DNA of 62,351 bases, the filler included, from Dugesia japonica (taxonomy: Eukaryota), in NCBI GenBank assembly GCA_001938525.1. It is 5 parts of 5 records of this genome, joined end to end, with 100 filler letters (N's around TTAATTAATTAA, not from the genome) between each part and the next. Parts side by side here need not be neighbours in the genome. Positions count along the whole stretch, not along the records: positions 1 to 17,118 come from MQRL01623485.1; 4 more parts are not named here. One strand, given 5' to 3'. Below the pieces are notes generated by a model. It was not told the DNA's origin. It did not search any database and worked only from the letters and a program-made list of their open reading frames with translations. Below are positions 1-17,118 of this stretch, in pieces (position 1 is the first letter of the stretch; the number at the start of each line of letters is the position of its first letter). A program made the position numbers and the translations under genes.

Positions 1-829
1 TAAAAATTCCCCCAAATCGACTTTTAAAAAAACCAACCAAAATAGACTTGATTCAACCTCATAGAGGAAACAAAAAAGTTGACACAATTTGACCTCACCG
101 AGTAAATTATCATCCAAATTCACCTAAAACCACCCAAAAGTAGACCGAATCAATATCACCAATGAAATTTTTAGTCTATTTTAATGTTCCTCGGACAGAA
201 TCTCAAATTAAGTACTTGTTTTTTACTATATAACTTTTTTTCTATAAGGTTTATTGATTTTTAACCGTATTATTCTAACTCACAGTAAAATTTCCAATTA
301 AAAATATACGTTAATGTTCATATTTTAGTTATTTTTTAGTTTTTGAAAAAATGATACCAAATCCAGGAGGACAGCTGTATATCTTTGTTAGGAAGCATTT
401 TTCCGAGACGATATTTAAACTTTGTGAAGTCACTTTTTCCTCTTGAGTTCAATAATACCAGATTTGGGTATACAGTTGTTAATTTGCGCACCGATATTTA
501 AGCGCTAAAATCTGAATTTTGAGATTTTTCCAACACAAAACCTCATTTATTTCATCGATGATTAACTTTGATGATTTTAAGTTCACATATTTGGAATAAG
601 CAAAACGTTCATAGAAACTGTGTTGATCTTTTTTGAGAAGAAAAATGTTTTTCGAAAAAATCTGTCTAAAATACTGGAAAATTGATGTAAAAATACTTCT
701 ATGTTAGAAAATTGCAAAAATTATTTTGGAAAATTTAGGTTGTTCACCCTATAAAAAATAATTAAAAAATTTTCATAAATTTTCACCCGGATTCTTATAT
801 AAAATTCCATATAGGTTTTTTCCCAATAA

Positions 830-930
830 AAAAGCTTGAAAAATATTACCACTTAAAAAGCCTGATAAATAATACTACTTAAAAAGCCTAAAAAATATTA
901 CTCCTTAAAAAGCCTAAAAATTATCCCAAC
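830..930. repeat. Short tandem repeat of about 26 bp (AAAAGCCTAAAAAATATTACTACTT-like), about 4 copies
   Basis: Directly visible repeated aaaagc(c/t)t...ac.actt units. Confidence 0.7.
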
Positions 931-1185
931 TAAATATACAGGGAAATTTAAAAACAGTTACTGAATTTCGACAATAAATTAATCCAAATTACATAATTTA
1001 TGTACAAAATATTTTTGCAAACTAAAAAGCTTAAAGAATTTANAAAAACAGGTNNTCCCATTAAAAATAAAATGTCACTGATTGAATTCGTCTAATAACA
1101 TAATTTGTGTGCAAAATATTTTCTCAACTAAATACATAAGGAAAATTTAAAAGCATTAATTTAATATTACTTAAGATGATGTCAA

Positions 1186-1277
1186 TTTAAATTCCCAACT
1201 AAAAACACTATTATTAAGTTTCATGACATCAATAATCATGGGAGGTACCGAATGTGTGCTGTTTCAAACCCCTCATA
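1186..1277. mobile_element. Terminal inverted repeat end of a non-autonomous DNA transposon, same family as 7981-10030
   Basis: ttaaattcccaactaaaaac...catc...gtgct...aaacccct matches 9946-10029 and the reverse complement of 7981-8073. Confidence 0.65.
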
Positions 1278-1304
1278 TCTATATAATAATAGTATATAAG
1301 TTAC

Positions 1305-3004
1305 TTTATTAGATGCATTTATATCACATTTATTTGCAATCAATAATTTCAGTATATCAATATGACCGTATTTACAGGCAAAATGAATCGGTTGATTTCC
1401 CCACTAAATTATCAGTTATTCATAAATTATTTAGTAAATACTAAATAAATTACTTTATCAGATGCATTCATATCACATTTGTTTGAAATCAACTTATTTA
1501 AAACATCAATATGACCATTTTGGCAGGCCAGATGTATTGGTTGAAAANCATTCTAAATAAGCATTTAGTGTTGAAATATTTCTTAAATACCAAAAATAAC
1601 ATGGTCAGAAGCATTGATATCACAATTGCTTGAAATCAACTTATTTAAAACACCAATATGACCATTTTGACAGGCCAGATGTATTGGTTGAAAACCATTC
1701 TAAATAAGCATTTAGTGTTGAAATATTTCTTAAATACCAAAAATNNNNNNNNNNNNNNNNNNNNNNNNNNNNNNNNNNNNNNNNNNNNNNNNNNNNNNNN
1801 NNNNNNNNNNNNNNNNNNNNNNNNNNNNNNNNNNNNNNNNNNNNNNNNTGAATTATTTCTTAAATACCAAAACTAACAAGGTCAGATGCATTTATATCAC
1901 ATCTATTTTTAATCAACATATTTAAAATATCAATATGACCATATTGACACGCCAAATGAATCGGTTGAACTCCATCCTAAAAATGTTTATCAATTAAGCA
2001 TTTACAAAACCGCAATTACTTCATTAGATGCATTGATATTACATTTGTTTTCAATCAATATTTTTACAATATCAATATGACTGTTTCTTAAAGCCAGGTG
2101 TATTGAGGAATTTGAATTCTAATCAATTAAATAACATTTTTTAGGAAATTTAAATTCACCTCATCATATAAATTGATGTTACATTCGTACGCAATCAACA
2201 TTTTTACAATATCAAAATAACCATTTGCACAGGCTAAGTGTATTGGTTGGTTTATATTCTAAAAATACAATAAATCATAAATTATGCAGAAAAATTTTAA
2301 ATGAGTAACGGATTTCTCAAATTCACTAATATCTATTTTCTTTGTGATGAATATTTGGACAATATCTAAATGACCATGTTTAACCGCTAAATGAAAAGGT
2401 TTATATCCCTTCTAAATTAAAATTTATTCAAAGTATAAATTAATGACAAATAAAATACAGAATCAAATACATTGATATCACATTTGTTTTCAATCAATAT
2501 TTTCACAATATCAATACGACCATTTTCGCAGGCAAAGTGAATCGGTTGACACTTATTCTAATTAATAATTAAAAATTCATAAATTATATAGTAAATAACA
2601 AATAATTACGTTATTTGATGCATTAATATCACATTTATTTTCAATTAATACTTTCACAATATCAATATGACCATTCTCACAAGCCAAATGAATAGGTTGA
2701 CGTCCATTCTAAATTATCGTTTATTTATAAATTGTTTAGCAAATAATAACTAATAACTTCATCAGTTACCCTGATATCACATTTATTTTCAATTAATATT
2801 TTCACAATATCAATATGACCATTCTCACAAGCCAAATGAATAGGTTGGCTTCCATTCTAAATGATCATTTATTTATAAAGTGTTTATAAAATAATAACTA
2901 ATAACTTCGTCTGATAGCCTGATATCACATTTATTTTCAATAAGTAATTTCACAATATCAATATGACCGTTCTCACATACATAATGTATTGGTTGCAATC
3001 CATT
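1305..3004 (-). repeat. ANK exon-intron tandem array, block C (11 visible exons, probably one more in the N gap)
   Basis: Exons 1305-1403, 1454-1552, 1601-1699, [gap 1745-1848], 1878-1976, 2020-2118, 2160-2258, 2310-2411, 2459-2557, 2610-2708, 2758-2856, 2906-3004. Confidence 0.93.
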
Positions 3005-6000
3005 CTAAATTAACATTTTTCAGATATCTTTTGAGATAACGTAAAATAATACAAAACATTGTACATAATTTATAAAATCATTCAAATATACATAGGCATT
3101 GTATAAAACAAACACAATTTGAAAATTCAAAGGACAACAACCTCTGGCTATCTTGTGAATATTATTTTCAGAGCTATCCACCAAAGTTGCAGTCTATCAA
3201 CAGCAAACTCAATTTTAATTGATTATGTATTTTAATCCAGTTGAAAAATTAATAGAGCCAGCTCCCACTGACTAAACGTAGTCCGATTAGGTAATCACAT
3301 AAAGTGGTTTAGTATTTTATACAGTTAATTAGAAAAAGTAGGAAGGTAGTAGCCAATAATCCACCCTTCCCCCGATGGAAAAGTGGTTTGGTTTTTTTGT
3401 TTGATTTGTTGGTTTAGAATTTTCGAAGTTTGATTGGTCGAAAACTCGGGTAGACAAACTTTATGATTTCGCATTTGATTTGCCAAATTTGGCTTGGGAA
3501 GTGCAAAAATTCCAATTTTGTTTAGAAATTTTTTCTGTCAGTATTTATTACATGGTTTCAACTTTGAAATGGTTGAATTCAGAATTAAATTTTCTTTATG
3601 GATATTACTTTTCTTGAAAAAATATTTAGTTCTCTCAGAAAATTTAGTAGTGCAATAAACTACTTTGACTTGGTTTATACATTTCTCGGAGAAAACCTAT
3701 CATATCGCCTTATAAAGGATAATTCTAGATTCAGGATAAAATTCTGAACATATTCTATATAGAGTTTGGTATAAAAATATGCTTCGTTCTCAAATTAGAA
3801 AATTGCCAGATGCCATGTCCCATCTTGGATAAAAAACTATTTGCTTTCGAAATACTTATGATAATCAAACAAATTTGATATCTTTTAACTCAAAATAAAA
3901 ACTAGAACACATTTCGGATTTGCTGTATTAAAATTTTGCATTTAAAAAATGGTATTTAATTATAGAATGAATTATAAATTATAATTCAAATATTTTTAAA
4001 ATATTTTTGTACCAATCAGCTTTATTATTAGGTATGTAACTTTACTTTTTGCAAAACATGTTTGGTTCTCTCAGAAAAGAATATGATCAATCTGCGCTTA
4101 TGTAATTCATAGAAAAAGTTGATTACATTTACCATAAAGCCTGATTTAAGAAGTCAACAAAAATTGATGACGATTTGATAGCTGTTCTTCTTAATAAGGA
4201 TAATGTTTGTTTAGATCGTATGAGCTACATAGGAGAAACTGTACTGGAAAAAAAATTGAAAATAAACAAACTTCAGTACATTGGGTTGGACAAGTACAGT
4301 AATGAAAATGATTGTCAAATAAATATTGTAGCCGGCGATACAGATAGTTTTTTTCTAGAAATAGAAAATATTAGTTTATATAAGTTTAGAAAGACTAACA
4401 GCAAATATAGTGAGTGATCTGATACTTGATACTTCTAATTACGATAAAGATCACGGCATTTATAGTAACAACATGAAATTATTTATAGAAAAAATAAAGG
4501 AATAAAATACATGGAAAAATACCAAGAATAGTCCGAAATGCTATAGCCTGCTTGATGATAAGAACAGTATGAGAGCATAAACACAGAAATTTGTTATCAG
4601 TCTTAACTTGACTGCTATAATGAGAATAAATCGGTCTAGGCTGAACAATTTATGATTACCACCAAAAATAATCAATTAATTAGTATTAAATCAAAGAAAT
4701 TAGCACTTACAAACACAGACGATAAACGCGTATGGGTTGATAAAAATAAAAGAGTGCCACATAGATACTTTACTATTAAATAGTTTTTTCCATCAATTTG
4801 ATCCATCCTGGTCAAGAACAATGTCTCAAATATAGGTAATTTATTATTTTTTTATTAATGTAATTTAAATTATTTAGATTATCATGGAGAAAATGAAAAA
4901 GATTAAAGAAAAATTTGTGAACGTATAACCGGGCGCTTTAGGGCCAAAAAATGAGAATGTACAAACCGGTCTTTATAATAAAAAGTTCTTATTATTTAAA
5001 AAAATTTTTATTTTATTTATCATGAGTTTGTCATGAAAATGACGTAGCCATGGATAATAGATGTCCTGGATGTGACATGAGCATGCATTATAAATTTCAA
5101 TCAAGTAGCGGAATAGGTCCGCACTTCCACTCCCCCCTACCGGGGTAGAATTTTCCAGTGCGTACCTACTTTTTTTGTTGTTTTATATATGATGTCTATG
5201 CGAATTTAGATAAATTGTTATATTAGACATTTTTATTAGACATTGTTAGTTATAAATAATTTAACACGCAATTTAATTCAATATTTATTTAACGCAAAAC
5301 GTTTCGACAGTATATCTGTAATCGTCAGGCAAACTGTTTAAAACGAAGAATNNNNNNNNNNNNNNNNNNNNNNNNNNNNNNNNNNNNNNNNNNNNNNNNN
5401 NNNNNNNNNNNNNNNNNNNNNNNNNNNNNNNNNNNNNNNNNNNNNNNNNNNNNNNNNNNNNNNNNNNNNNNNNNNNNNNNNNNNNNNNNNNNNNNNNNNC
5501 ATGATTCTTTCCCAATAATCTTTAAAATTTCTGCACAGAATTTTGAAATTATTAATATTTATATGACATTTACCTAACCGACTATGTTCTTGAATTCTTT
5601 TACAGAGATGACGGTAAGTCTCATCAATGTATGTGGCATTACACCCATACACTCATATTTATAAATAAGATTAGAAACCAATCCACAAGGAGTCTTAGAC
5701 ATATTACTGAACGCACTTATAATTTTAAAATACCTGGACACAATCTTAAAATTTGGAAGATTTACTGAATATTTAAATTATTAATTAATTATTAGTTATT
5801 TGAATTATATTAGTACATCAAATTATTATTTTGAGGAGAAATTTGAATTCTGTTATAAACTAATTATAGAGTGTTTAGAATTAGTTGTTACAATTTACAT
5901 TATTGAAACTTACAATTACACATTTGAAGTAATAATTTTATTTTTTTCTTTTTTATTTATTTTTACTGCTTAATATTAAAACAATTGGGTTAAAATTAAG

Positions 6001-9000
6001 AGATTCTACATAACGTAAAGAAGAATTTTCTTCGGTAACCAGATTTAAAATAAATTGCAAAAGAAAACATGTAAATGTTAAAGGACATAACCATCCTTAA
6101 TTGTTGGATGTGGGTCGAATAAATACTAATAAATTATATAGGACTCGCTGTGGTAATCACTGTTACCTTCAGCAATATATATTAAATATCAAAATCATTT
6201 ATATTGTTTATCTAATCTAATATATTTAATGAATTACAAATAAATTACATAAAATGCATCGATAGCACATTGGTTTGTTATCAAAATTTTCACAATATCA
6301 ATATTGCCACTCATACAAGCCAAATGTATGGGTTCAATGTCATTCTAAATAAATGCATTAAAAAAAAATATTTTCCAAATAACAATAAAAAAACTTTGTC
6401 CGATAAAGTAATNCCGCATTTATATGCAACTAGAATTTTTAAAACATCAATATGACCATGTTTACAAGCCATTTCTATCGGCATATATAAATTCTAAGTT
6501 AATATTTAAAATTTAATTATACAACAAATAAATCACTTCTTTAGATTCATTCATGCCAAATTTATTAGCAATCAATATTTTCACAATATCAATATGACCA
6601 TTTTTACATGCCAAATGTATTGGATGATAATCAAACTAACCATTTATTAATTATTTAATTCAATTAAATTAAATTACATTAATTATACTGAGATTATTAT
6701 ACTTCTGCGAAATAAAAATTTCCACAATACCACTATAACCATATTCACAAGCCAAATGTATTGGTTGAAGGCCATTCTAAATAAAGATAATTTCCAACAT
6801 CATATAAAAAAAGAAACTTTATCAGGAGCATTGACCTCACAGTTATTTTCAATTAAAAGTTTTATAATATCAATATAACCATTCTCACAGGCAATATGTA
6901 TTGGTTGATATCCTTTCTAGATTTACATTTAATCACAAATTATTTAATAAATATCAAATAAATTACTATGTTATATACATTAATATTACATTTGTTTTTA
7001 ATCAATATTTGCACAATATCAAAATGACCATACTCACAAGCTAAATGAATTGGTTGATTACCAATCTTAATTAAAATTTATAAATATATTTAGAAAAATA
7101 TAAAATACTTCATTGATACTATTGAGATCACATTGGTTTGTAATCAATACTTCAACAATATTGCTATGTCCTTTTTTACAGGCAAAATGTATGGGTGTGT
7201 TTTTATTCTAAATTAGATGTTTTTCACTTCATTTAATAAATAATAAAAAAATACAAATATTGCACATGCATTAATATCACAATTATTTGCAATCAATAAT
7301 TTCAAAATATCCATATAACCGTATTTACAGGCTAAATGTATCGGTTGATATCCATTCTAAATAAATATTCATTCATAAATAATATCAAAAATAACAAATA
7401 GATTACTTTATCAAATACATTAATATCACAAAAGTTAGCAATCAATAATTTCAAAATATCAATATAACCATTCTTACAAGCAAAATGAATAGATTGATAT
7501 CCTTTCTAATAACATGTTTTAATTATTTAATAAATAATAACTAATTTACAAGTTTATCAGATTTGTGCAGATCACATTTATTTTCAATTAATGTTTTCAA
7601 AATATGAGCATGGCCATTATCACAAACCAAATGTATCGGTTCACAACCATTCTAAGTAAGTATGTATAAATTAATAAACAAATAACACAAAATATCACAT
7701 TATCACATGTATTAATATCACACTTATTTTCAATTAATATGTTCACAATATTAATGTGACCATTCTTACAGGCCAAATGTATCGGTTGATGTCCATTCTT
7801 TATTATATGTGTTAAATATATTCAATTAATTAAAGTTACATTATCAAATACATTGATATCACTGTGATTTGCAAGTAATATTTTCACAATTTCAATATGA
7901 TTATTCTCGCAGGCCAAATGAATTGGTTGACATCCATTCTAAAAAAAAGATTTATTTATGAACTATTCAGTAAAAGTTAATAGAGGGATAAAGGGAACAG
8001 CGCACCTATCCCTTCCCTCCAAGATTAGTGATGTGATGAAACTTAATCCCCGAGTTTTTAGTTTGGAATTTAATAATTACATTTTATTAGATAATTTTAC
8101 GTTACTGTTTTTAAATTTTTCCTGTTTTCAGTTGGAAAAAATATTTAGCACACAATTTAGGACATTGCATTAATTTCATCGTCAAAATTTTACTTAATTA
8201 ATAGTGTTAGATGAGTTTGGAGAACTCATAAAAGATATGAATTCACAACTAGCTTCCATTCAACGAAGTTTTATAATGTTTCGTTGAAAACAATGAACAT
8301 AAATTTGTTTTTTTCAAACAAATTAAAAAATTTATATTTGAAAGTCAAAATAAAAAATCTCACCTTTTGAAAAATATTTCATTAATTCATATAATTCGTG
8401 TATTTTAAAATTAAATAAATAACGCAAAATTTAAAAATACAATAAAAATAATTTTTGTTGAAAATCAGAAATTTGATAATTTTACAAATTAAAATAAAAT
8501 TATAAGAATAATAAAATTTTAATATCCATTACAAATTAAAAATTTTATATTTAACACATTATAAATTTCACAATCGCTTCNNNNNNNNNNNNNNNNNNNN
8601 NNNNNNNNNNNNNNNNNNNNNNNNNNNNNNNNNNNNNNNNNNNNNNNNNNNNNNNNNNNNNNNNNNNNNNNNNNNNNNNNNNNNNNNNNNNNNNNNNNNN
8701 ACCAAAAATTTTAATCTGTTTTTAAAAAATAAAAATATAACGGAAATTCAGGGAAAAGATCGATTTGTTTAATTAATTTTTTTTTTTATTTAATTTATTT
8801 TACACTTGTTTTTCGATTTATTACATTGACGGTTCGTCGTTTTTATCCGTACTCATAATAATCATTGGAAAATATTTATTGAATAGAAAGTACAGTAATG
8901 AGAACCTTACTTTTACACTTTTACTGGGTTCAAATCAACTGATTGACAATTTATTTTACACTTTCTTTTTTAATTTTATTTTACTAAGTATAAAGATTAG

Positions 9001-9603
9001 TGATTTTTAATCACGTTTTTCTTACTCAGCGTAAAAGTCTCTATCGAATAGATATTTCAATGTTCAAATTTGAAATATTTTTATTTTTTCAAAACTGTAT
9101 GTTATAATGTTCTTAAGTTGAAACATTATATTAACCACAAGAGCAACCTCTAATATTTTTATAATTACAATTATTGCGAGAATAATTGTTGAAGTTAACC
9201 ATTGATCGCATTTGAGATTTTATTAAAGTAAGGGCTTTGATCAAATTAAATTGTCGTTTTAAAGATATTCAAAAATTTCGAGAATTGTCTTCTTCGGGCA
9301 TATGATGACTTTTTAATAAATTTTAACGATAATAGGACATTGTTACAAAATTTGTTTACATTTTATTAAAATTTTATTGGTTTATTTAAATTATAAATTT
9401 TATTTTAAATTTGATGTCAAAATTTTTAATTAATTTGAAAATTTTTTTAAATGTTTTATTATTAGTTGGATTTTATTTTTTTATATAATTTTTTTTGTAT
9501 ATTTAAAATTTTAAAAATTATTTTTATCATAAGTTAATATAATTTTATTCAATTAATTTTTGTTATATTATATTATATTATCTTTTAAAACTATTTATTT
9601 AAA

Positions 9604-9637
<34 letters not shown>

Positions 9638-12600
9638 TAATATAAATAAATTATTTAAATTATTTACTATTATTTAAATTTTATTTAAATTTAATTTATT
9701 GATTTATTAATTTTTTTAATTTCAGTTATTAAAATTATTGAAAACCACATTGATCTTAGGTTTATCCTCATTAATCATGAACAAATATTGATTAAGTATG
9801 ATTTTGATTTCTCCGATGTATGTGTGTGTGAATTTTTAAAAAAATCAAGGTATGAACTTTTTTAGATGAATGTTCGGCAAATCTAGAGAATTTCAGTAAA
9901 AATTCCATAAAAAACATGAAAAAGTTAAAAAAAAGTAACGTAATATTTAAATTCCCAACTAAAAACAGGGATTAAATTCCATTACATCACTATTCCTGGG
10001 CGGATCGTGCCAGTACGCTAAAAACCCTTAGTGAAGTTTAATATATTACATTATTGCACACGAAAATATCACATATGCTATCAATCAATATTTTCACAAT
10101 TTCTATGTAGCCATATTTACAGGCGACATGAATCGGATTAGATCCATCCTAAATAAAAGCTTTCTATTAATAATTTCGTAAAGAAATGCAAAATGACTTC
10201 GTCGGGTTCATTGATATCACAATTACTTTCAATCAAAATTTTNNNNNNNNNNNNNNNNNNNNNNNNNNNNNNNNNNNNNNNNNNNNNNNNNNNNNNNNNN
10301 NNNNNNNNNNNNNNNNNNNNNNNNNNNNNNNNATTGTAAATAACATTATTAGATGCATTTATATCACAATTGTTTAGGATCAATATTTTCACTATATTAA
10401 CATGACCATGCTTACAAGCCAAATGTATTGGTTGATTTTCTTTCTACATCAAAATTTCTTAAAAAATTATTTCGTAAACATCAAATAAATCACATTATTA
10501 AATGCATTGATATCACATTTATTTTCAATCAATATTTTAACAATATCAATATAACCATTTTTGCAGGCAAAATGTATCGGTTGATATCCAAACTATGTAA
10601 TATTTTATGTAATAAATTATTTAATAAATATCTGAAATCAACATTATTAGATGCATATATATCACAGTTTTGCTCAATCAATTCTAAGACAGTTTCAATG
10701 TGGCCATATTTACAGGCAATATGAAGCGGTTGATATCCATTCTAATTAAACGTCATAAATTATTTTGAATATATAAAATTGATCACATTGTCAAATCCAT
10801 CAATATCACATTTGTTCGAAGTCAAAAGTTTCACAATATCAATATTACCATTCTTACATGCAAGATGAATCGGTTGATATTCACACTAATTTGCATTTAT
10901 TCATAAATTAATTTTAAAATAATAAATAAATAACATCACTAGTTGCATTGATATCACATTCTTTTGCAATCAATTTATTCAAAATACCAATATGACTATT
11001 TTCACAGGCAACATGTATCGGTTGATATCCATTCTAAGTAAACAATTATAAAATTAATAACTAAATATCAAATGAATTACATTGTTAGTNGCATTTAAAT
11101 TACAATGGTAATGACTCAATATTTCTACAATATCTATATGACCATATTGACAGGCAAAATGTATTGGCTGATCACCCGCCTGAATAAAATTTTATACATG
11201 AATCATTATCTAAATACAATAAAAGTACCCCATTAGATGAATTTATATCACAATTATTTTCAATCAATATTTCTACAATATCTATATGACCATATTNNNN
11301 NNNNNNNNNNNNNNNNNNNNNNNNNNNNNNNNNNNNNNNNNNNNNNNNNNNNNNNNNNNNNNNNNNNNNNNNNNNNNNNNNNNNNNNNNNNNNNNNNNNN
11401 NNNNNNNNNNNNNNNNNNNNNNNNNNNNNNNATATTGACAGGCAAAATGTATTGGTTGATCACCCGTCTGAATAAAATTTTATACATGAATTATTATCTA
11501 AATAACAATAAAAGTACCTCATTAGATGAATTTATATCACAATTATTTTCAAGCAATATTTTTACAATATCAATATAACCATATTTACATGCAAAATGTA
11601 TTGGTTGATTTCCATTCTAAAATAGCAATTATTCATCAATTTATAAAGTTAAAAATCAATACTGATTTTTCAGATGCATTAATATTACATTTGTTTTCAA
11701 TCAATATTTTCACAATAAAAATGTGTCCATTTTTGCAGGCCAAGTGTATAGGTTCATTCCCATACTAAATTTTTAATTAAATATAAACTACCAAGTAATT
11801 AACAAATAAATTACCTCATCAACTACATTTATATCACATTTATTTTCAATTAATATTTTCACAATATCATAATGGTTATTCATGCAGGCAAAATGTATTG
11901 GTTGAAATCCGTTCTAAATTAATAAAATATTTAATAATTAGTTGCTCAACAGTTAAAATACAATTTTATCCGCTTTGTTTATATCACATTTGTTTGCAAT
12001 CAATAATTTTAAAATATCAATACGACCATTTTCACATAAAAAATGAATGGGTTGATATCCATTCTAATTTAATATTAGTTTTAAAAAATATTTCAAATTA
12101 ACAAAATAAACTCTATCAGAAACATTGATATCATATTTTTTTCCAATCAATATTTTAACAATATCGATATGACCATTTTTACAAGCTAAATGAATAGGTT
12201 GATATCCATTCTAAATTAAAAATAATTGATAAATTAGTCAAATACAAATGATTTACATAATTTGCATAAATTTTACAATTTCTTGAAATGAGATATTCTG
12301 CGATAAGAATATGTCCATTTTTGCAAGCCAAATGAATGGCTTGATTACCATTCTAAATTATTATTTATTTCTAAATTAATTAAGAAATATCAAATTACTT
12401 TATCACATGCATTGATATCAAAATTGTTGGCAATCAATAATTTCACAATACCAATATGACCATTCTTACATGCTAAATTTATTGATCTATATCCTTTCTA
12501 AATTAATGTTTGTTGACTGACTTTGAAATAACAAATTAAATACCATATCGTCAAATGCGTTGAAATCACATTTTTCTGAAATCAATAACTCCACAATACC

Positions 12601-15600
12601 AATATGACCATACTTACAGGCCAAATGCATAAGATTATATCCACACTTGAGTTAAATATTTGTTTCAACTATAAAAGTAATTAATAAAGACATTACTTTA
12701 GCAGATGCATATATATCAAATTTATTTGCAATTAATAATTTCACGATATTAATATGACAATTTATACATGCAAGATGTATGGGTTGATATTCACACTAAA
12801 TGAAAGTTAATGAATTAAATATAACAAATTAAATTACACCACTAGTTACACTGGAATCACATTTTTCAGAAATCAATATTTTCACAATGTTTATATGCCC
12901 AAATTCACTTGCAAAATGAATCGGTTGATATCCATTCTATATTATCATTTTTCATGAAATTATTTTATAATTATTACTTTATCAAACGCATTAATATTAC
13001 ATTTGTTTTCAATCAATATTTTCACAATATCAATATGACCATTCTTACAAGCAATATGTATCGGTTGATATTCAGACTACATTGCACCTACTCTTAAAAT
13101 ATTTACAATATTTAAAATAAATTACATTAGTAATTGCACTAATATCACATTTCTTTGAAATTAATAATTTGGCAATATATACATGACCCTGTTCACAAGC
13201 AAAATGTATCGGTCGGTACCCGTTCTAAATTATAATGTCTCTGTTCTTCACTTTGTAAATAATTAATTACTTTATCAGGCATATTTATATCAGATTTATT
13301 TGTAATCAACATATTTACAATATCAATATTACCATTCTCACAGGCCAAATGTATCGGTTGACATCCCTTCTAAATTAATATTCAAAATTTTGTTAATAAA
13401 AAATTAAATACTTCGTCAGATGAAATGATATTGCATTTATTTACAATTAACGTTTTTACAATATCAATATATCCATTCTTACAAGACAAATGTATCGGTT
13501 TATATCCATTCTAAGCAAACAATTAATTATAAATTATTTACTAAATATAAAATTAATTACATTATTATTTGTATTAATATTAACTTGGCTTAAAATCAGT
13601 TTGTTCACTATATCAATACGCCCATATTCACAAGCAAGATGTATTGGTTGATTTCCCATCTAAATTTATATTTATTTATATATTATATAGAAGAACTGAA
13701 TAAATTACTTTATTTGATGCATTAATGTTACAATTATTTTCAATCAATATTTCCACAATATCAATGTAGCCTTTCTTACAAGCAAAATGAATTGGTTGAT
13801 TTCCATTCTAAATTAACAATTTTGTTAAGTACACAAAGTCAATAATAAATAAACTACTCGTTTTTCAGAGGCATTAATATTACATTTATTTTCAATCAAT
13901 AATTGTACAATATCGAAATGTCCATTCTTGCATGATAAATGTATCGGTTGATATCTGTTCTAAATTAACATTTATTCAGATAACATTTAAATAAAAAAAT
14001 AACTTCATTATATGTATTAATATTACATGAATTAGCAATCAATATTTTCACAATATCAATATAACCTTTCATACAAGCAAAATGTATCGGCTGATATCCT
14101 TTCTGAATTAACATTTATTCATAAATTAATTGGAAAATAAGCAAAAGTTACATGGTCAGATGCATTGATATTACACTTGTTCGCAATCAATATTTTCATT
14201 ATATCAATTTGTCCATTCCAACTTGCTAAATGTATTGGCTGATAACCATTCTAAATTATTAATTTTCAAAATTTGTTTATTAAATAACAAAAAAAATACT
14301 TTATCAGATGCATTGATATCACATTTATTTGTAATCAATAATTTAGCAATGTCTGTATGATAGGCAAAATGTATTGGTTGATAGCCTTTCTAAATAAAGT
14401 TTATTAAAATTATTTTCTTAAAATAAAATAAATTGCTTTATTAAATTTATTGAGAATACATTGATTTTCAATCAATATCTTCACAATATCAATATGACCG
14501 TTTTTACAAGCAAAATGAATCGGTTGATTTCCACTCTAAATTAATTTATAACAATAAATATATTACTTTTTATGTTATACAAATAAAGTACTTTTTCAAA
14601 TGAATTGATATCACATTGGTTTGCAATCAATATTTGTGCAATATCAATATGACCATTTTTACAAGAGAAATGTATCGGTTGATAGTCATTCTAGCTTAAC
14701 AATAATTATTAATAGTTTTCAGCAATAAAACAAAATTACATTATTTTTTGCTTTAATATCACAATTATTTGCAATTAATATTTTAACCACCTCAATGTGA
14801 CCATGTTCACAGGCCAAATGTATTGGCTGGTTTCCATTCTAGGTTAATATATCCAAATTTTTTAATAATTAAAAGTAAATTACTTTATCAGATACATTAA
14901 TGTCACATTTATTCACTATCAATAATTTCACAATATCACTACGACCATTCTTACATGAGAAATGTATCGGTTGATTTCCATTCTAAATTAATTATTAATA
15001 TATTATTTACTAAATAGCCAATAAATTACGTTATTATTAGCATCGATCTTACATTTGTTTTCAATCAATATTTTTACAATACCGATGTGAGACTTTTCAC
15101 AGGCAAAATGTATCGGTTGATATCCATACTAAAGTTATATTTATTGATTTTAATTAATAAATTACTAAATTACTTCGTTAGATGCATTTACATCACATTT
15201 ATTTTCAATTAATATTTTAACAATATCAATGTTGCCATTCTCGCAGGCCAAATGTATCGGCAGATATCCCTTCTAAAAATAATTATTCATAATTATTAAA
15301 AATCAAAAGCACATTTGTGAAAGAATCAATTTCGCAATGATTTGACAATAATAATTTTACTAGTTCCACTCGACCATAACGGCATGCAAAATGCAAAGGG
15401 CGCCATGAATACTTCTAAAGGTTCAAATATTTAATTATAAGAATCAATGCATGTAATTAGTTCACATTTTCCATTTCTAGAAATGCAATTTTAAATTTCT
15501 TTTTAATTTCTATATCAGAATCCTTTTTGATTGATTCAATAAACAATAGATAATAGCTAAAATTAATTGAAATTATGAAATTTAAATAATGAATTAACTT

Positions 15601-15603
15601 CAT
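1305..15603 (-). CDS. Very long ankyrin-repeat protein, one ankyrin repeat per exon (at least 60 ANK exons); 3' end lies beyond the left edge of the window
   Basis: On the reverse complement each AG...GT-bounded exon translates to a 33-aa ANK unit, e.g. 1403-1305 WGNQPIHFACKYGHIDILKLLIANKCDINASNK and 15414-15313 KYSWRPLHFACRYGRVELVKLLLSNHCEIDSFTN. Exons are 90, 96, 99 or 102 nt, all phase 0. No stop codons in the roughly 20 exons translated by hand. Putative start ATG at 15603 (exon 15603-15599, intron 15598-15557, exon 15556-15466, giving MNYYLLFIESIKKDSDIEIKKKFKIAFLEMEN) is less certain than the ANK exons. Confidence 0.9.
3337..5170 (+). mobile_element. Maverick/Polinton-derived remnant in an ANK-gene intron, carrying a C-terminal fragment of protein-primed family B DNA polymerase
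   Basis: 4050-4780 gives IDDDLIAVLLNKDNVCLDRMSYIGETVLE, GDTDSFFLE (YxDTDS motif), DTSNYDKDH, PKCYSL and KKLALTNTDDKRVW, with stops and frameshifts. Starts AGTAGG at 3337 with sequence similar to the TIRs at 21797 and 24777, and ends TACCTACT at 5170. Confidence 0.75.
5285..5765 (-). mobile_element. Penelope-like retroelement 3' fragment (GIY-YIG endonuclease plus hammerhead-containing end)
   Basis: LIYKYE-C-xGCNATYIDETYRHLCKRIQEH...NFKIL matches the Penelope GIY-YIG pattern (YIGETxRxLxxRxxEH). It is followed by a CTGACGA...GAAA motif. Confidence 0.8.
5293..5332 (-). ncRNA. Degenerate minimal type I hammerhead ribozyme at the Penelope end
   Basis: Minus strand ttgc CTGACGA t tacag-atata-ctgtc GAAA cgtt TT gcg. 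The core is intact but stem I is weak and loop III is not palindromic. Confidence 0.55.
6249..7938 (-). repeat. ANK exon-intron tandem array, block B (12 exons)
   Basis: Exons 6249-6344, 6395-6493, 6537-6635, 6678-6776, 6818-6916, 6967-7065, 7109-7207, 7255-7356, 7407-7505, 7550-7651, 7699-7797, 7840-7938, each with AG/GT boundaries on the minus strand. Confidence 0.93.
7981..10030. mobile_element. About 2.05 kb non-autonomous DNA transposon with about 90 bp TIRs (Mutator-like?) inserted in an ANK intron
   Basis: 7981-8073 is the inverted counterpart of 9946-10029. Removing the element restores an intron of about 50 nt, like its neighbours. The TSD is only degenerate (aagttaata / aagtttaata). 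Confidence 0.7.
10050..15414 (-). repeat. ANK exon-intron tandem array, block A (37 exons, unit about 145 bp)
   Basis: Exon low coordinates: 10050, 10198 (partly gap), 10345, 10494, 10643, 10787, 10935, 11081, 11229 (partly gap), about 11369 (partly gap), 11518, 11663, 11815, 11962, 12112, 12257, 12399, 12544, 12697, 12838, 12978, 13126, 13271, 13412, 13561, 13709, 13858, 14004, 14152, 14300, 14437, 14592, 14740, 14884, 15030, 15174, 15313. Confidence 0.93.
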
Positions 15604-15878
15604 TTTAATGAAATATACAAAATGAGAACTGGCTAAATTCAGTCAGGGTTGGCCTAAAAAACATAAAAGAACTAAATTTTACAAAATTATTTTGTAAATA
15701 ATAATAATATTGAAATAGGAGATGAAACTCAAGTAATACAAAGATATATATGTAGATGAAAATCAAATTCTTAGACCAATAAATAATAATAATAATGAAA
15801 TGGAAGACGATGAATTATTAGAGTTATATAGATGCAGATGATGCAGTAATATAATAGGATTTATATTGCTGCAAAGCA

Positions 15879-16079
15879 TTATGATAAATATATTTTTGAA
15901 ATGGTTTTAAAACTTAAAAAATTATTTTTTTTAAAAAACCATTGATCTGTTAATTAATAAACTCAACTAATAAAAATTTATTTACCGTTTAAAACGACTT
16001 TATTTATTGACAGATCAATGGTTTTTAAAAAAAATAATTTTTTAATTTTAAAACCTTTTAAAAAATATATTTATCATAA
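15879..16079. repeat. Fold-back inverted repeat with arms of about 80 bp, made of the GATCAATGG pLTR-like repeat
   Basis: ttatgataaatatattttt...aaccattgatctgttaat pairs with attgacagatcaatggtt...aaaaatatatttatcataa. Confidence 0.8.
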
Positions 16080-16367
16080 AGATTTGTTTGCATTATTAAT
16101 AGACCCATTTGACAGTTAATTGGATAACAGCTAATCGGACGACAATTCTTTAGGAAAATATGAGTGCACATTTTTTATATAGTGTGAACTTTAACACCTT
16201 AATGTAATTAGTGAATTTTCACTCCATAAAATTTTCAAAATTTTTCGTTTAATTCATATAAAATGATGAGCCTCAAATTATTTATGAATCATGAAAAATT
16301 TTATACTTTAAACATAATTCATCATGAACTTTATTATTATTATTATTATTATTATTATTGTTGTTGT

Positions 16368-17118
16368 TGTTAGGTTATTTCTTCAATTGGTAATTGGTTA
16401 TTCAAATTAGAACTAATATTTTTAGACATTATTTATTTTTCTACTCTAAATGTAATAAGAGAAATTATTGAATAGTAGCTTAAAAATATTTATCCAGAAT
16501 TAACTCAATTTCTATTGGCTCAATAATTATTAAATAATAATTATTTCCTTATATCCCCCTTCTTAAGAAACTTTCTAAGTTTTTCCACATTTCTTTCTAA
16601 TCGCTGTCCATTTTCCCCTTGTACCGCGTATCGTCTTTCGTGAATTTTCTCAATTATTTGATAGGGTCCTTCAAATCTGTCTTCACTTTTATTTCATGTT
16701 TCTACCTTGATGAGTACCATATCGCCCACTTTGAATTCTCTTTTAGTAATCACGTCTGAAGGGTTTTCTTTAGTTCTATCTGAAAAGTCTGACTCGTACA
16801 ACTTTTCTCTGCTAATTTTCTTTTCAAATAAGAGCTCAGCCGGGCTCTTTCCAGTATTCTTCTGTTTTGCTGATGTCATTGTAAATTCTATTTCTGGTAA
16901 AAGATCTGTCCAATCTCTTGAATTTCTTTCCTGAAGTGTTCCATTAATCAAATCTCGAATTGTCCTGAACTGTCTTTCAATTTTTCCGTTGGCATTATGA
17001 TGATATGGACTCTAAAAGCAAAGTTTAATATCTAGCTTCTCTCCCATAACTCTAGATTCAAACGCTTTTCCACAATCTAATCTTATCTCTCTTGGACATC
17101 CAAATCTCAATATCCACT
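16368..17118 (-). mobile_element. Ty3/Gypsy 3' fragment: integrase end, PPT and LTR of about 186 bp (16553-16368)
   Basis: RLDCGKAFES...SPYHHNANGKIERQFRTIRDLIN...WTDLLPEIEFT...TGKSPAELLF...RFEGPYQII (rve core and GPY/F motif). PPT aagaaggggga. The LTR is homologous to 38112-38301. Confidence 0.9.

Follow-up and report, generated by a model that had tools for sequence, protein, structure and literature searches.

The array of ankyrin exons at positions 1305-15414 of the window (the whole 62,351-nt stretch of DNA that was analysed) is a real eukaryotic gene that is maintained by selection. We propose, with a probability of about 0.6, that it is a nuclear protein-coding gene for one giant, almost all-ankyrin protein that is constitutively spliced, rather than a library of binders. 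Within the contig, the product would comprise ~2,000 residues made nearly wholly of ankyrin repeats, and the host would be a eukaryote whose genome is AT-rich and whose introns are very short.

Anatomy of the ankyrin exon array

A frame-aware scan recovered 58 units of 33 codons, which scored 53-161, whereas the best score in the shuffled window was 13. After boundary refinement, the minus strand showed 57 complete ankyrin exons as well as 3 that are truncated by gaps; together they form three blocks (37, 12, and 11), which reproduces the 60 exons counted in the earlier note. The blocks are located as follows.

10050-15414, minus strand: block 1, 34 complete ankyrin exons and 3 partial pieces (scan and boundary refinement)
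10198-10242, 11229-11296, and 11432-11467, minus strand: the partial exons of block 1, abutting gaps
6249-7938, minus strand: block 2, 12 complete ankyrin exons, numbers 36-47 (scan and boundary refinement)
1305-3004, minus strand: block 3, 11 ankyrin exons, numbers 48-58, with gap 1745-1848 inside

Block strand and order are common to all three blocks. A tandem repeat finder detected periods of 144-149 bp at 1288-3018, 6837-7979, and 10337-15306.

The complete exons are nearly uniform: 47 of the 57 are 99 nt long (33 codons), and the others measure 102 nt (7), 96 nt (2), or 90 nt (1). Every length is divisible by three and all 57 are in phase 0, as had been described. Each is flanked by AG and by GT or GC, the GC donor occurring once. 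The 51 short introns range from 40 to 56 nt and average 47 nt. Taken modulo 3, these lengths are distributed 12/18/21, and the frame constraint thus lies on the exons alone; retention of any of the 51 would lead to a stop or a frame shift. Exons have a GC content of 28.3%, introns one of 15.1%. Since all exons are symmetric and in phase 0, loss or duplication of any one of them leaves the frame intact, and the premise that exons can be skipped or duplicated without a frame shift holds.

The ankyrin identity of the exons is evident from Pfam. Exon 50 alone matches Pfam Ank (PF00023) with E = 2.7e-10 and 40.4 bits (cut-off 21.1) over model positions 1-33 of 33, so the exon boundary coincides exactly with that of the Pfam repeat, at the beta-hairpin tip, and the exons are cut at a constant hairpin position as claimed. 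The first exon (15313-15414) is divergent and cap-repeat-like, with E = 3.3e-7 against Pfam Ank, and the last exon also matches this family. The repeat framework reads QPIH..AC..GH.DIVK.LI.NKCDIN and includes two conserved cysteines; P5, I6, H7, C10, I17, and L21 are each at least 90% conserved.

Ranked by variability, the leading exon positions are 31, 33, 23, 3, 30, 1, 32, 11, 25, and 20, and the diversity at each position is low (Y/N at position 3, K/E at 11, N/Y at 12). Of the variable positions named in the earlier note, the hairpin and positions 3 and 11 stand, whereas position 8 shows a mere L/F alternation. The outer-face positions 20, 23, and 25 of helix 2 are equally variable. The more variable positions do overlap those randomised in DARPins, but the profile is generic for ankyrin repeats.

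Gene ends and long interruptions

The following features lie around and between the blocks.

16544-17116, minus strand: C-terminal remnant of an LTR-retrotransposon integrase, broken by stop codons and lying upstream of the gene (weak Pfam matches, ORFs)
15466-15603, minus strand: candidate first coding exon, read from the sequence
7939-10049, minus strand: 2.1-kb interruption between exons 35 and 36, an intron with a ~2-kb inverted-terminal-repeat element (roughly 7996-10013)
3005-6248, minus strand: 3.2-kb interruption between exons 47 and 48, presumably a long intron full of decayed mobile-element debris
4145-4414, plus strand: family-B polymerase-like fragment in the 3.2-kb interruption (Pfam DNA_pol_B, E = 0.0058, below the cut-off)
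5341-5777, minus strand: GIY-YIG-like fragment in the 3.2-kb interruption (resemblance by eye)
1101-1270, minus strand: end of a second copy of the inverted-repeat element, beginning ~35 nt past the GT donor of exon 58

At the upstream end, two starts are candidates: a 3-codon ATG exon at 15466-15474 (M-E-N), which precedes the first repeat exon by ~50 nt, and a longer in-frame ORF with its ATG at 15601-15603, in a frame open from 15642. The candidate first exon is followed by a GT at 15464-15465 and a 51-nt intron, and it has no Pfam match. Further upstream, the integrase remnant gives sub-cut-off Pfam matches to SH3_Tf2-1 and Integrase_p58_C, and its atlas neighbours carry rve/MLVIN_C; it lies outside the gene and marks its likely 5' limit. 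Pfam revealed no other domain in either flank of the array, the upstream 1.7 kb consisting of low-complexity ORFs and this remnant. In particular, no NACHT NTPase precedes the repeats in the NLR-like manner of the database protein P0002, the upstream 1.7 kb being without such a Pfam match, and no signal or signalling domain was found. Rfam detected no non-coding RNA in the sequence on either side of 9493-9528, and the local self-BLAST likewise covered the two sides of this segment.

The downstream end is less clear-cut. The array may form only the N-terminal portion of a larger protein with several domains, whose C-terminal domain, for example a channel, death, or enzymatic module, would lie beyond the low end of the contig, a possibility that we regard as real though unlikely. 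The GT donor that follows exon 58 is intact. The element end shortly past it (1101-1245 versus 8159-8016, 78% identity; 1185-1242 versus 9945-10000, 81%) is oriented as in intron 35/36, which points to a transposon-bearing intron and not to the end of the gene, so the gene may extend past the low end of the contig. Moreover, many giant ankyrin proteins bear another domain, P0002 for example combining NACHT with ankyrin repeats. However, Pfam identified nothing recognisably coding in 1-1304, and reading through from exon 58 meets a stop after 22 more codons that could be the true terminus. No ZU5/UPA/death or channel domain was found in the window, and the gene may have its 3' end off the contig. 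On the downstream side, where a six-transmembrane TRP channel domain would follow in a TRPN/NompC protein, the sequence runs out in transposon DNA at the contig edge. An ankyrin-only protein with no further domain offers little hold on function.

Both transposon-filled stretches would be enlarged introns of a single gene, the 3.2-kb one presumably so. In the 2.1-kb stretch, local self-BLAST paired 8019-8083 with 9999-9937 and 8093-8128 with 9947-9911 in inverted orientation; because these ends match on both sides of the assembly gap at 8581-8700, the stretch is one element. A translation scan of the whole window showed no ankyrin-like exon inside either long interruption. Since this gap and the one at 5352-5499 in the 3.2-kb stretch lie within the long interruptions, the joining of the three blocks rests on scaffolding only.

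It is therefore conceivable that scaffolding joined, through repeats and gaps, what are really two or three distinct ankyrin genes or arrays of paralogues, or that the copy number is wrong through collapse of near-identical units; we consider such an artefact improbable. Both long interruptions contain N gaps as well as transposon sequence, and their lengths are ~45-70 times that usual for introns in the array. In addition, the three gaps inside the array are located exactly at the most-alike units. Nevertheless, strand, exon phase, and family consensus are common to all blocks, with nearest relatives intermixed between them. Splice signals also bracket the joins, as GT follows exons 35 and 47 and AG precedes exons 36 and 48, and the 2.1-kb insert has matching inverted ends across its gap.

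The flanks of the three in-array gaps make the copy number there uncertain. Gap 11297-11431 lies inside a tandem duplicate of ~154 nt that is 94% identical and has its breakpoints within exons, and the sequences on the two sides of the gap share a 5-nt overlap. At gap 1745-1848 the flanks overlap and the intron type is identical, while gap 10243-10332 accommodates exactly one absent unit (a 48-nt intron and 54 nt of exon). The frame is safe at all three gaps because every exon is in phase 0.

Selection and growth of the array

The open frames of the array are maintained by selection. No in-frame stop occurs in the 44 clean 99-nt exons, whereas the other two frames hold 107 and 255. Overall, ~1,900 codons run without a stop in 23%-GC sequence whose synonymous sites and introns are near saturation. 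Exon-exon identity is 0.69 (0.70/0.80/0.60 by codon position), and the similarity of intron interiors is 0.607 as against 0.568 in shuffled controls. The dN/dS ratio is 0.37 overall and falls to 0.13 at framework positions.

We take DARPin positions 2, 3, 5, 13, 14, and 33 to correspond to exon positions 33, 1, 3, 11, 12, and 31. At these positions dN/dS is 0.63 over all pairs and 0.60 in 17 independent close pairs (bootstrap CI 0.38-0.92), the power being limited by short and partly saturated sequences. The excess of amino-acid change at the binding face that the binder idea called for is thus not seen at this limited power, and the ratios indicate relaxed constraint and not diversifying selection. 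Hairpin and loop positions are nearly neutral, with dN/dS of 0.94-0.99. Near-neutral hairpin positions (dN/dS ~0.95) are compatible with a binding surface that is free to change. Position by position, the variability profile correlates (Spearman 0.79, p = 6e-8) with one computed from a pool of 406 repeats of unrelated giant ankyrin proteins, so the pattern is a property of the fold. This fold-inherent variability is why DARPin design randomised those positions.

The array grew by repeated in-register tandem duplication of a ~148-bp unit, made of a 99-nt phase-0 exon and a ~47-nt intron. Most copies are old, with a few recent ones around exons 27-29, 48-50, and 55-57. For most of the array dS is ~0.86, and adjacent repeats are not more similar than distant ones, identity remaining flat at 0.69-0.70 at lags 1-8; higher-order repeat units were rejected on this flat profile. 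That neighbours are no closer and dS is near saturation indicates no ongoing homogenisation or rapid turnover. The youngest duplicates in block 3 are exons 48-50 and 55-57, where units 48/49, 49/50, and 56/57 are 82-85% identical. The open exons and intact splice sites are preserved through purifying selection that acts on the ankyrin framework, and intron sequences have diverged to saturation by drift.

Known repeat arrays and the binder-library reading

A profile of 55 exons was compared with 1.84 billion representative proteins and returned 122,752 ankyrin hits. Among the best 150 of these (at least 285 bits), no QPIH motif or family member was present; fragments of up to about 8 repeats score lower than those listed. 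With no framework relative among the matches listed from these very large protein collections, the family is probably lineage-specific. A search for homologues of a 74-aa ORF around exon 37 gave no candidate in the 41-129 aa range. A metagenome search with a 55-aa ORF gave three loci, two of them AT-rich; all three are uninterrupted intronless ankyrin ORFs, and none is related to the array in architecture. A literature search on arrays with one ankyrin repeat per exon found nothing specific.

Sixty repeats are less exceptional than previously suggested, since database proteins contain 50-97 ankyrin stretches (P0001, 97; P0008, 61; P0003, 57; P0026, 54). These giant ankyrin ORFs match or exceed the array in repeat number, vary at the same positions, and often carry a Cys following PLH.A. 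However, the four that were looked up (P0002, P0050, P0026, and P0008) are single intronless ORFs, none of the matches listed has QPIH, and the best consensus match covers 20 of 33 residues. The canonical ankyrins (ANK1/2/3, unc-44) and the 29-repeat spring of NompC/TRPN likewise form a long uninterrupted solenoid of 33-residue repeats, and in vertebrate ankyrin genes many repeats each occupy one 99-nt exon. The array differs from them in having at least 60 repeats in place of 24-29, introns of only ~47 nt throughout, and its own framework with the two conserved cysteines.

Arrays of equal-sized exons are also known from other folds. Fibrillar collagen exons measure 54 nt. Like these collagens and nebulin (PMC1553488), the ankyrin array is a large set of equal-sized, frame-preserving exons that arose by duplication of a unit and would be constitutively spliced, whereas the fold differs, each exon is exactly one Pfam repeat, and micro-introns lie between them.

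The earlier note had proposed that the array could be a natural DARPin-like library that generates variable binders for immunity or host interaction by alternative splicing or unequal recombination. On this reading, exon choice, or unequal recombination in soma or germline, would yield many binders with different surfaces. We judge this highly improbable, and hold the same view of a combinatorial cassette in which cells or individuals carry differing subsets or orders of the ~60 exons through regulated skipping or recombination of the 148-bp unit. The idea has attractions: each phase-0 exon is one structural repeat and all combinations stay in frame, the hairpin and loop positions evolve almost neutrally, and unequal exchange does occur, as is seen from a small number of recent in-register duplications. 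Nevertheless, the DARPin-equivalent dN/dS is not above 1, the variability profile is the generic ankyrin one with low diversity per position, and dS near saturation without extra similarity between neighbours argues against rapid turnover. The array resembles DARPins in its consensus-like framework and in variation at hairpin and helix-1 surface positions; however, DARPins are synthetic, with 2-3 internal repeats and fully randomised positions, whereas the array has 2-3 common residues at these positions and dN/dS below 1.

Splicing considerations point in the same direction. Introns of 40-56 nt usually imply intron definition and constitutive splicing, with rare exon skipping. The ~60 micro-introns would accordingly be removed constitutively by intron-definition splicing. 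Seven studies contributed 14 runs that could not clearly be classed as DNA, of which 8 were tentatively taken as RNA and 6 were left unclassed. These runs contain 0.28-0.39 of the words sampled, an indirect sign that the array is expressed. All 14 lie below the exon-only ceiling of 0.473, while DNA runs contain 0.64-0.86 of the words. Expressed as 59-82% of that ceiling, their range largely overlaps the 64-86% of all words in DNA runs, which fits bulk inclusion of most exons.

Precedent for shuffling exists in brown-algal LRR exon arrays (PMC3341825, PMC11378527). The ROCO-type receptors of Ectocarpus similarly place one repeat on each small symmetric exon and can gain or lose repeats in frame, and their exon shuffling is marked by repeat exons on the non-coding strand and inactivated copies in introns (PMC3341825). 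Such marks are absent here: in a translation scan of the whole window no plus-strand score exceeded 28, compared with 53-161 for the units, and no score reached 25 for dead repeat copies in the long interruptions or flanks. The ankyrin array also differs from these receptors in repeat type, in showing no diversifying selection at the ligand face (at limited power), and in having no attached signalling domain; the absence of a signal or signalling domain equally speaks against a binder library. Taken together, the library idea gained no support from dN/dS, variability profile, or marks of shuffling, and is unsupported rather than refuted.

Finally, an unexpressed dead array, either a pseudogene or a satellite-like expansion of an ankyrin exon, is scarcely credible and was rejected, since the missing homologue in protein databases and the transposons within and around the array are outweighed by ~1,900 stop-free codons despite near-saturated synonymous sites and introns, splice sites that are all intact, exon lengths that are all multiples of three, and the framework dN/dS of 0.13.

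We therefore return to the single constitutively spliced gene, whose product may be a single extended ankyrin solenoid that acts as a scaffold, an interaction platform, or an elastic element. If the cassette reading were true, the locus would be a counterpart of DARPin libraries and of the variable LRR receptors of lampreys and brown algae, and transcripts that mix exons, if they exist, would make it the first natural repertoire of binders built on ankyrin repeats; the current evidence leans the other way. What the array represents is an unusually clean and extreme case of protein growth by tandem exon duplication, with ~60 one-repeat exons separated by micro-introns, old and yet kept perfectly open by selection. 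It offers a natural case for studying how repeat proteins lengthen, how a spliceosome faces ~60 consecutive introns of ~47 nt, and how far an ankyrin solenoid can extend.

Anatomy of the ankyrin exon array

The very AT-rich piece at 1-17118 (GC of 18-28% per kb) carries tandem repeats at 1288-3018, 6837-7979, and 10337-15306, whose period is 144-149 bp. Upon translation of the minus strand, each period gives a single stop-free stretch of 33 codons with the pattern N-G-Y-Q-P-I-H-L-A-C-K-N-G-H-I-D-I-V-K-I-L-I-E-N-K-C-D-I-N-A-S-N-K. After boundary refinement, an AG...GT model fits 57 complete exons, with a single GC donor, and their lengths are 99 nt (47 exons), 102 nt (7), 96 nt (2), and 90 nt (1). 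As all of these are multiples of three, both ends of every exon are in phase 0. The 51 short introns range from 40 to 56 nt (mean of 47) with the consensus GTAATT...ATTTAG, and their lengths are spread 12/18/21 modulo 3, so the multiple-of-three constraint applies to the exons only. A single exon matches the whole 33-position Pfam Ank model (E = 2.7e-10; 40.4 bits, cut-off of 21.1); each exon thus corresponds precisely to one ankyrin repeat, with its boundaries at the tip of the hairpin. Together with three partial exons adjoining assembly gaps, this bears out the earlier note's count of 37+12+11 = 60 one-repeat exons, the sole correction being that the gene runs from high to low coordinates.

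Each repeat has two conserved cysteines, C10 (93% of exons) and C26 (84%), at sites that are alanine in the typical ankyrin consensus, and K or N takes the place of the usual glycine at the end of helix 2. Two units of the array depart most from the canonical form.

14437-14535, minus strand, exon 7: donor is GC, not GT
14300-14389, minus strand, exon 8: only 90 nt, three codons absent near the helix-1/loop junction

Copy number is uncertain at three gaps because the copies are most alike there. The gap at 10243-10332 has exactly the room for a missing intron and 18 codons. The two sides of 11297-11431 share 5 nt and might even belong to a single exon, and those of 1745-1848 are two overlapping versions of one intron. 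Because of the uniform phase 0, none of these gaps can disrupt the reading frame. Two longer interruptions separate the three blocks of exons.

8019-8083 versus 9999-9937: inverted ends of an element in the 2.1-kb interruption between exons 35 and 36
Between exons 47 and 48: 3.2-kb interruption of decayed mobile-element debris
4145-4414, plus strand: family-B DNA polymerase-like fragment with a GDTDS motif (Pfam E = 0.0058, below cut-off)
5341-5777, minus strand: GIY-YIG-like fragment, frameshifted and seen by eye only

The inverted ends indicate a transposon inside intron 35/36, and the two fragments in the 3.2-kb intron look like Polinton-like and Penelope-like debris. No hidden ankyrin exons were found by a translation scan of both stretches. 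As both contain N gaps, the linkage of the blocks rests on scaffolding; the agreement of strand, phase, family consensus, and block-edge splice sites makes it quite probable that they form one gene. The inverted-terminal-repeat family has two copies (about 7996-10013 and 1101-1270) in the same orientation, each ~25-35 nt into the intron after an ankyrin exon (exons 35 and 58), a shared placement that may reflect target preference or an old duplication.

At the low end, the GT donor of exon 58 is kept and the inverted-repeat element starts ~35 nt later, oriented as in intron 35/36, suggesting that the gene may continue off the contig. Alternatively, it may end by read-through of exon 58, where a stop follows 22 further codons. 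The features at the high end are listed below.

15472-15474, or in frame 15601-15603, minus strand: candidate start ATG, then GT and a 51-nt intron into a divergent first repeat
16544-17116, minus strand: C-terminal remnant of an LTR-retrotransposon integrase with many stops and sub-cut-off SH3_Tf2-1 and Integrase_p58_C matches

Ahead of the first repeat, an ORF (15466-15603, minus strand) stays open for 61 codons, and its in-frame ATG is followed by a hydrophobic stretch that could be a signal/anchor sequence or AT-rich noise. Further upstream of the candidate ATG, only the integrase remnant, which is truncated by the high contig edge, and low-complexity sequence were found. Between this remnant and the gene start lies a palindrome/MITE-like hairpin (15872-16086), a 219-nt stretch 83% identical to its own reverse complement. 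A 26-nt tandem repeat (3.6 copies, 829-921) and two ATT/TTA microsatellites that match each other exactly (9604-9643 and 16331-16359) are also present.

Coding status and selection

No in-frame stop occurs in the 44 clean 99-nt exons, compared with 107 and 255 in the other two frames, and GC is 28.3% in exons versus 15.1% in introns. Mean exon-exon identity is 69% (0.70/0.80/0.60 by codon position), and intron interiors are 0.607 identical versus 0.568 in shuffled controls. Nei-Gojobori comparison among exons gave dS of ~0.86 and dN/dS of 0.37 overall and 0.13 at the conserved framework positions. Although the array is old and its introns have become saturated by drift, ~1,900 codons have stayed free of stops and ~115 splice sites have been preserved, which shows that it is under purifying selection; on these grounds, pseudogene and satellite readings were rejected.

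When 31-mers sampled from 11432-15414 were sought in a run index, six DNA runs contained 0.64-0.86 of them, and 14 runs from 7 studies that are not clearly DNA (8 guessed RNA and 6 unclassed) contained 0.28-0.39. Of all words, a fraction of 0.473 lies wholly within exons. All 14 runs fall below this exon-only ceiling and reach 59-82% of it, a range that overlaps the word recovery of the DNA runs. As an indirect hint that depends on guessed library types, this share is the one expected if mRNA includes the bulk of the exons. We favor, with a probability of about 0.6, a giant ankyrin scaffold gene that would be transcribed and constitutively spliced: the exons would be joined into one giant scaffold protein, and the micro-introns would be removed by intron definition.

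The binder-library reading

The earlier note proposed that the array could be a cassette library of ankyrin binders resembling designed ankyrin repeat proteins (DARPins). Its structural premise holds, since all exons are phase 0 and any of them could be dropped in frame; nothing found here positively supports the library function, and several observations speak against it. The most variable exon positions (31, 33, 23, 3, 30, 1, 32, 11, 25, and 20) do overlap the DARPin-randomised set, which maps to positions 33, 1, 3, 11, 12, and 31, but outer helix-2 positions vary too and the diversity is shallow (Y/N, K/E, N/Y). The variability profile correlates with that of 406 pooled repeats from unrelated giant ankyrin proteins (Spearman 0.79, p = 6e-8), so by sequence comparison the pattern is one of the ankyrin fold. 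At DARPin-equivalent positions, dN/dS is 0.63 when all pairs are used, and 17 independent close pairs give 0.60 (bootstrap CI of 0.38-0.92). For the entire hairpin, it is close to 1. Such values reflect relaxed constraint rather than diversifying selection.

Introns as short as these (40-56 nt) imply splicing by intron definition, where exons are seldom skipped and alternative splicing usually takes the form of intron retention, and retention of any of the 51 short introns stops or shifts the frame. Exon shuffling in Ectocarpus ROCO genes was argued from opposite-strand repeat exons and dead intronic copies (PMC3341825), whereas a translation scan of the array, its interruptions, and its flanks found neither. 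Nor is the repeat number unique: 60 is large, yet the profile search matched proteins with 50-97 ankyrin stretches. A cassette library is therefore very unlikely.

Growth and relatives of the array

Exon identity is flat at lags 1-8 (0.69-0.70), neighbors being no more alike than distant exons, and nearest relatives are scattered over all three blocks; thus, most duplications are ancient and homogenisation is not ongoing. A few are recent: the two units on the sides of 11297-11431 share 94% identity over 154 nt that take in intron sequence, their breakpoints lying within exons, and units 48/49, 49/50, and 56/57 are 82-85% identical. The array grew by in-register duplication of a 148-bp exon-plus-intron unit.

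A profile search of 1.84 billion representatives gave no protein with the QPIH..AC framework among the matches listed, where the best consensus match was 20/33 residues. The framework was likewise absent from proteins of 41-129 aa in a homologue search and from the metagenome contigs searched, so that this negative result applies to proteins outside the range of ~130-270 aa. All four giant ankyrin matches whose gene was fetched are single intronless ORFs, whereas the array has one repeat per exon; this layout at the ~60-exon scale is thus unusual among those inspectable. Vertebrate ankyrin genes have 99-nt repeat exons. Conceptually, the array is grouped with vertebrate ankyrin genes, nebulin (PMC1553488), and collagen-type exon arrays, and we file the gene as a putative lineage-specific ankyrin-repeat protein with an extreme tandem-exon architecture.
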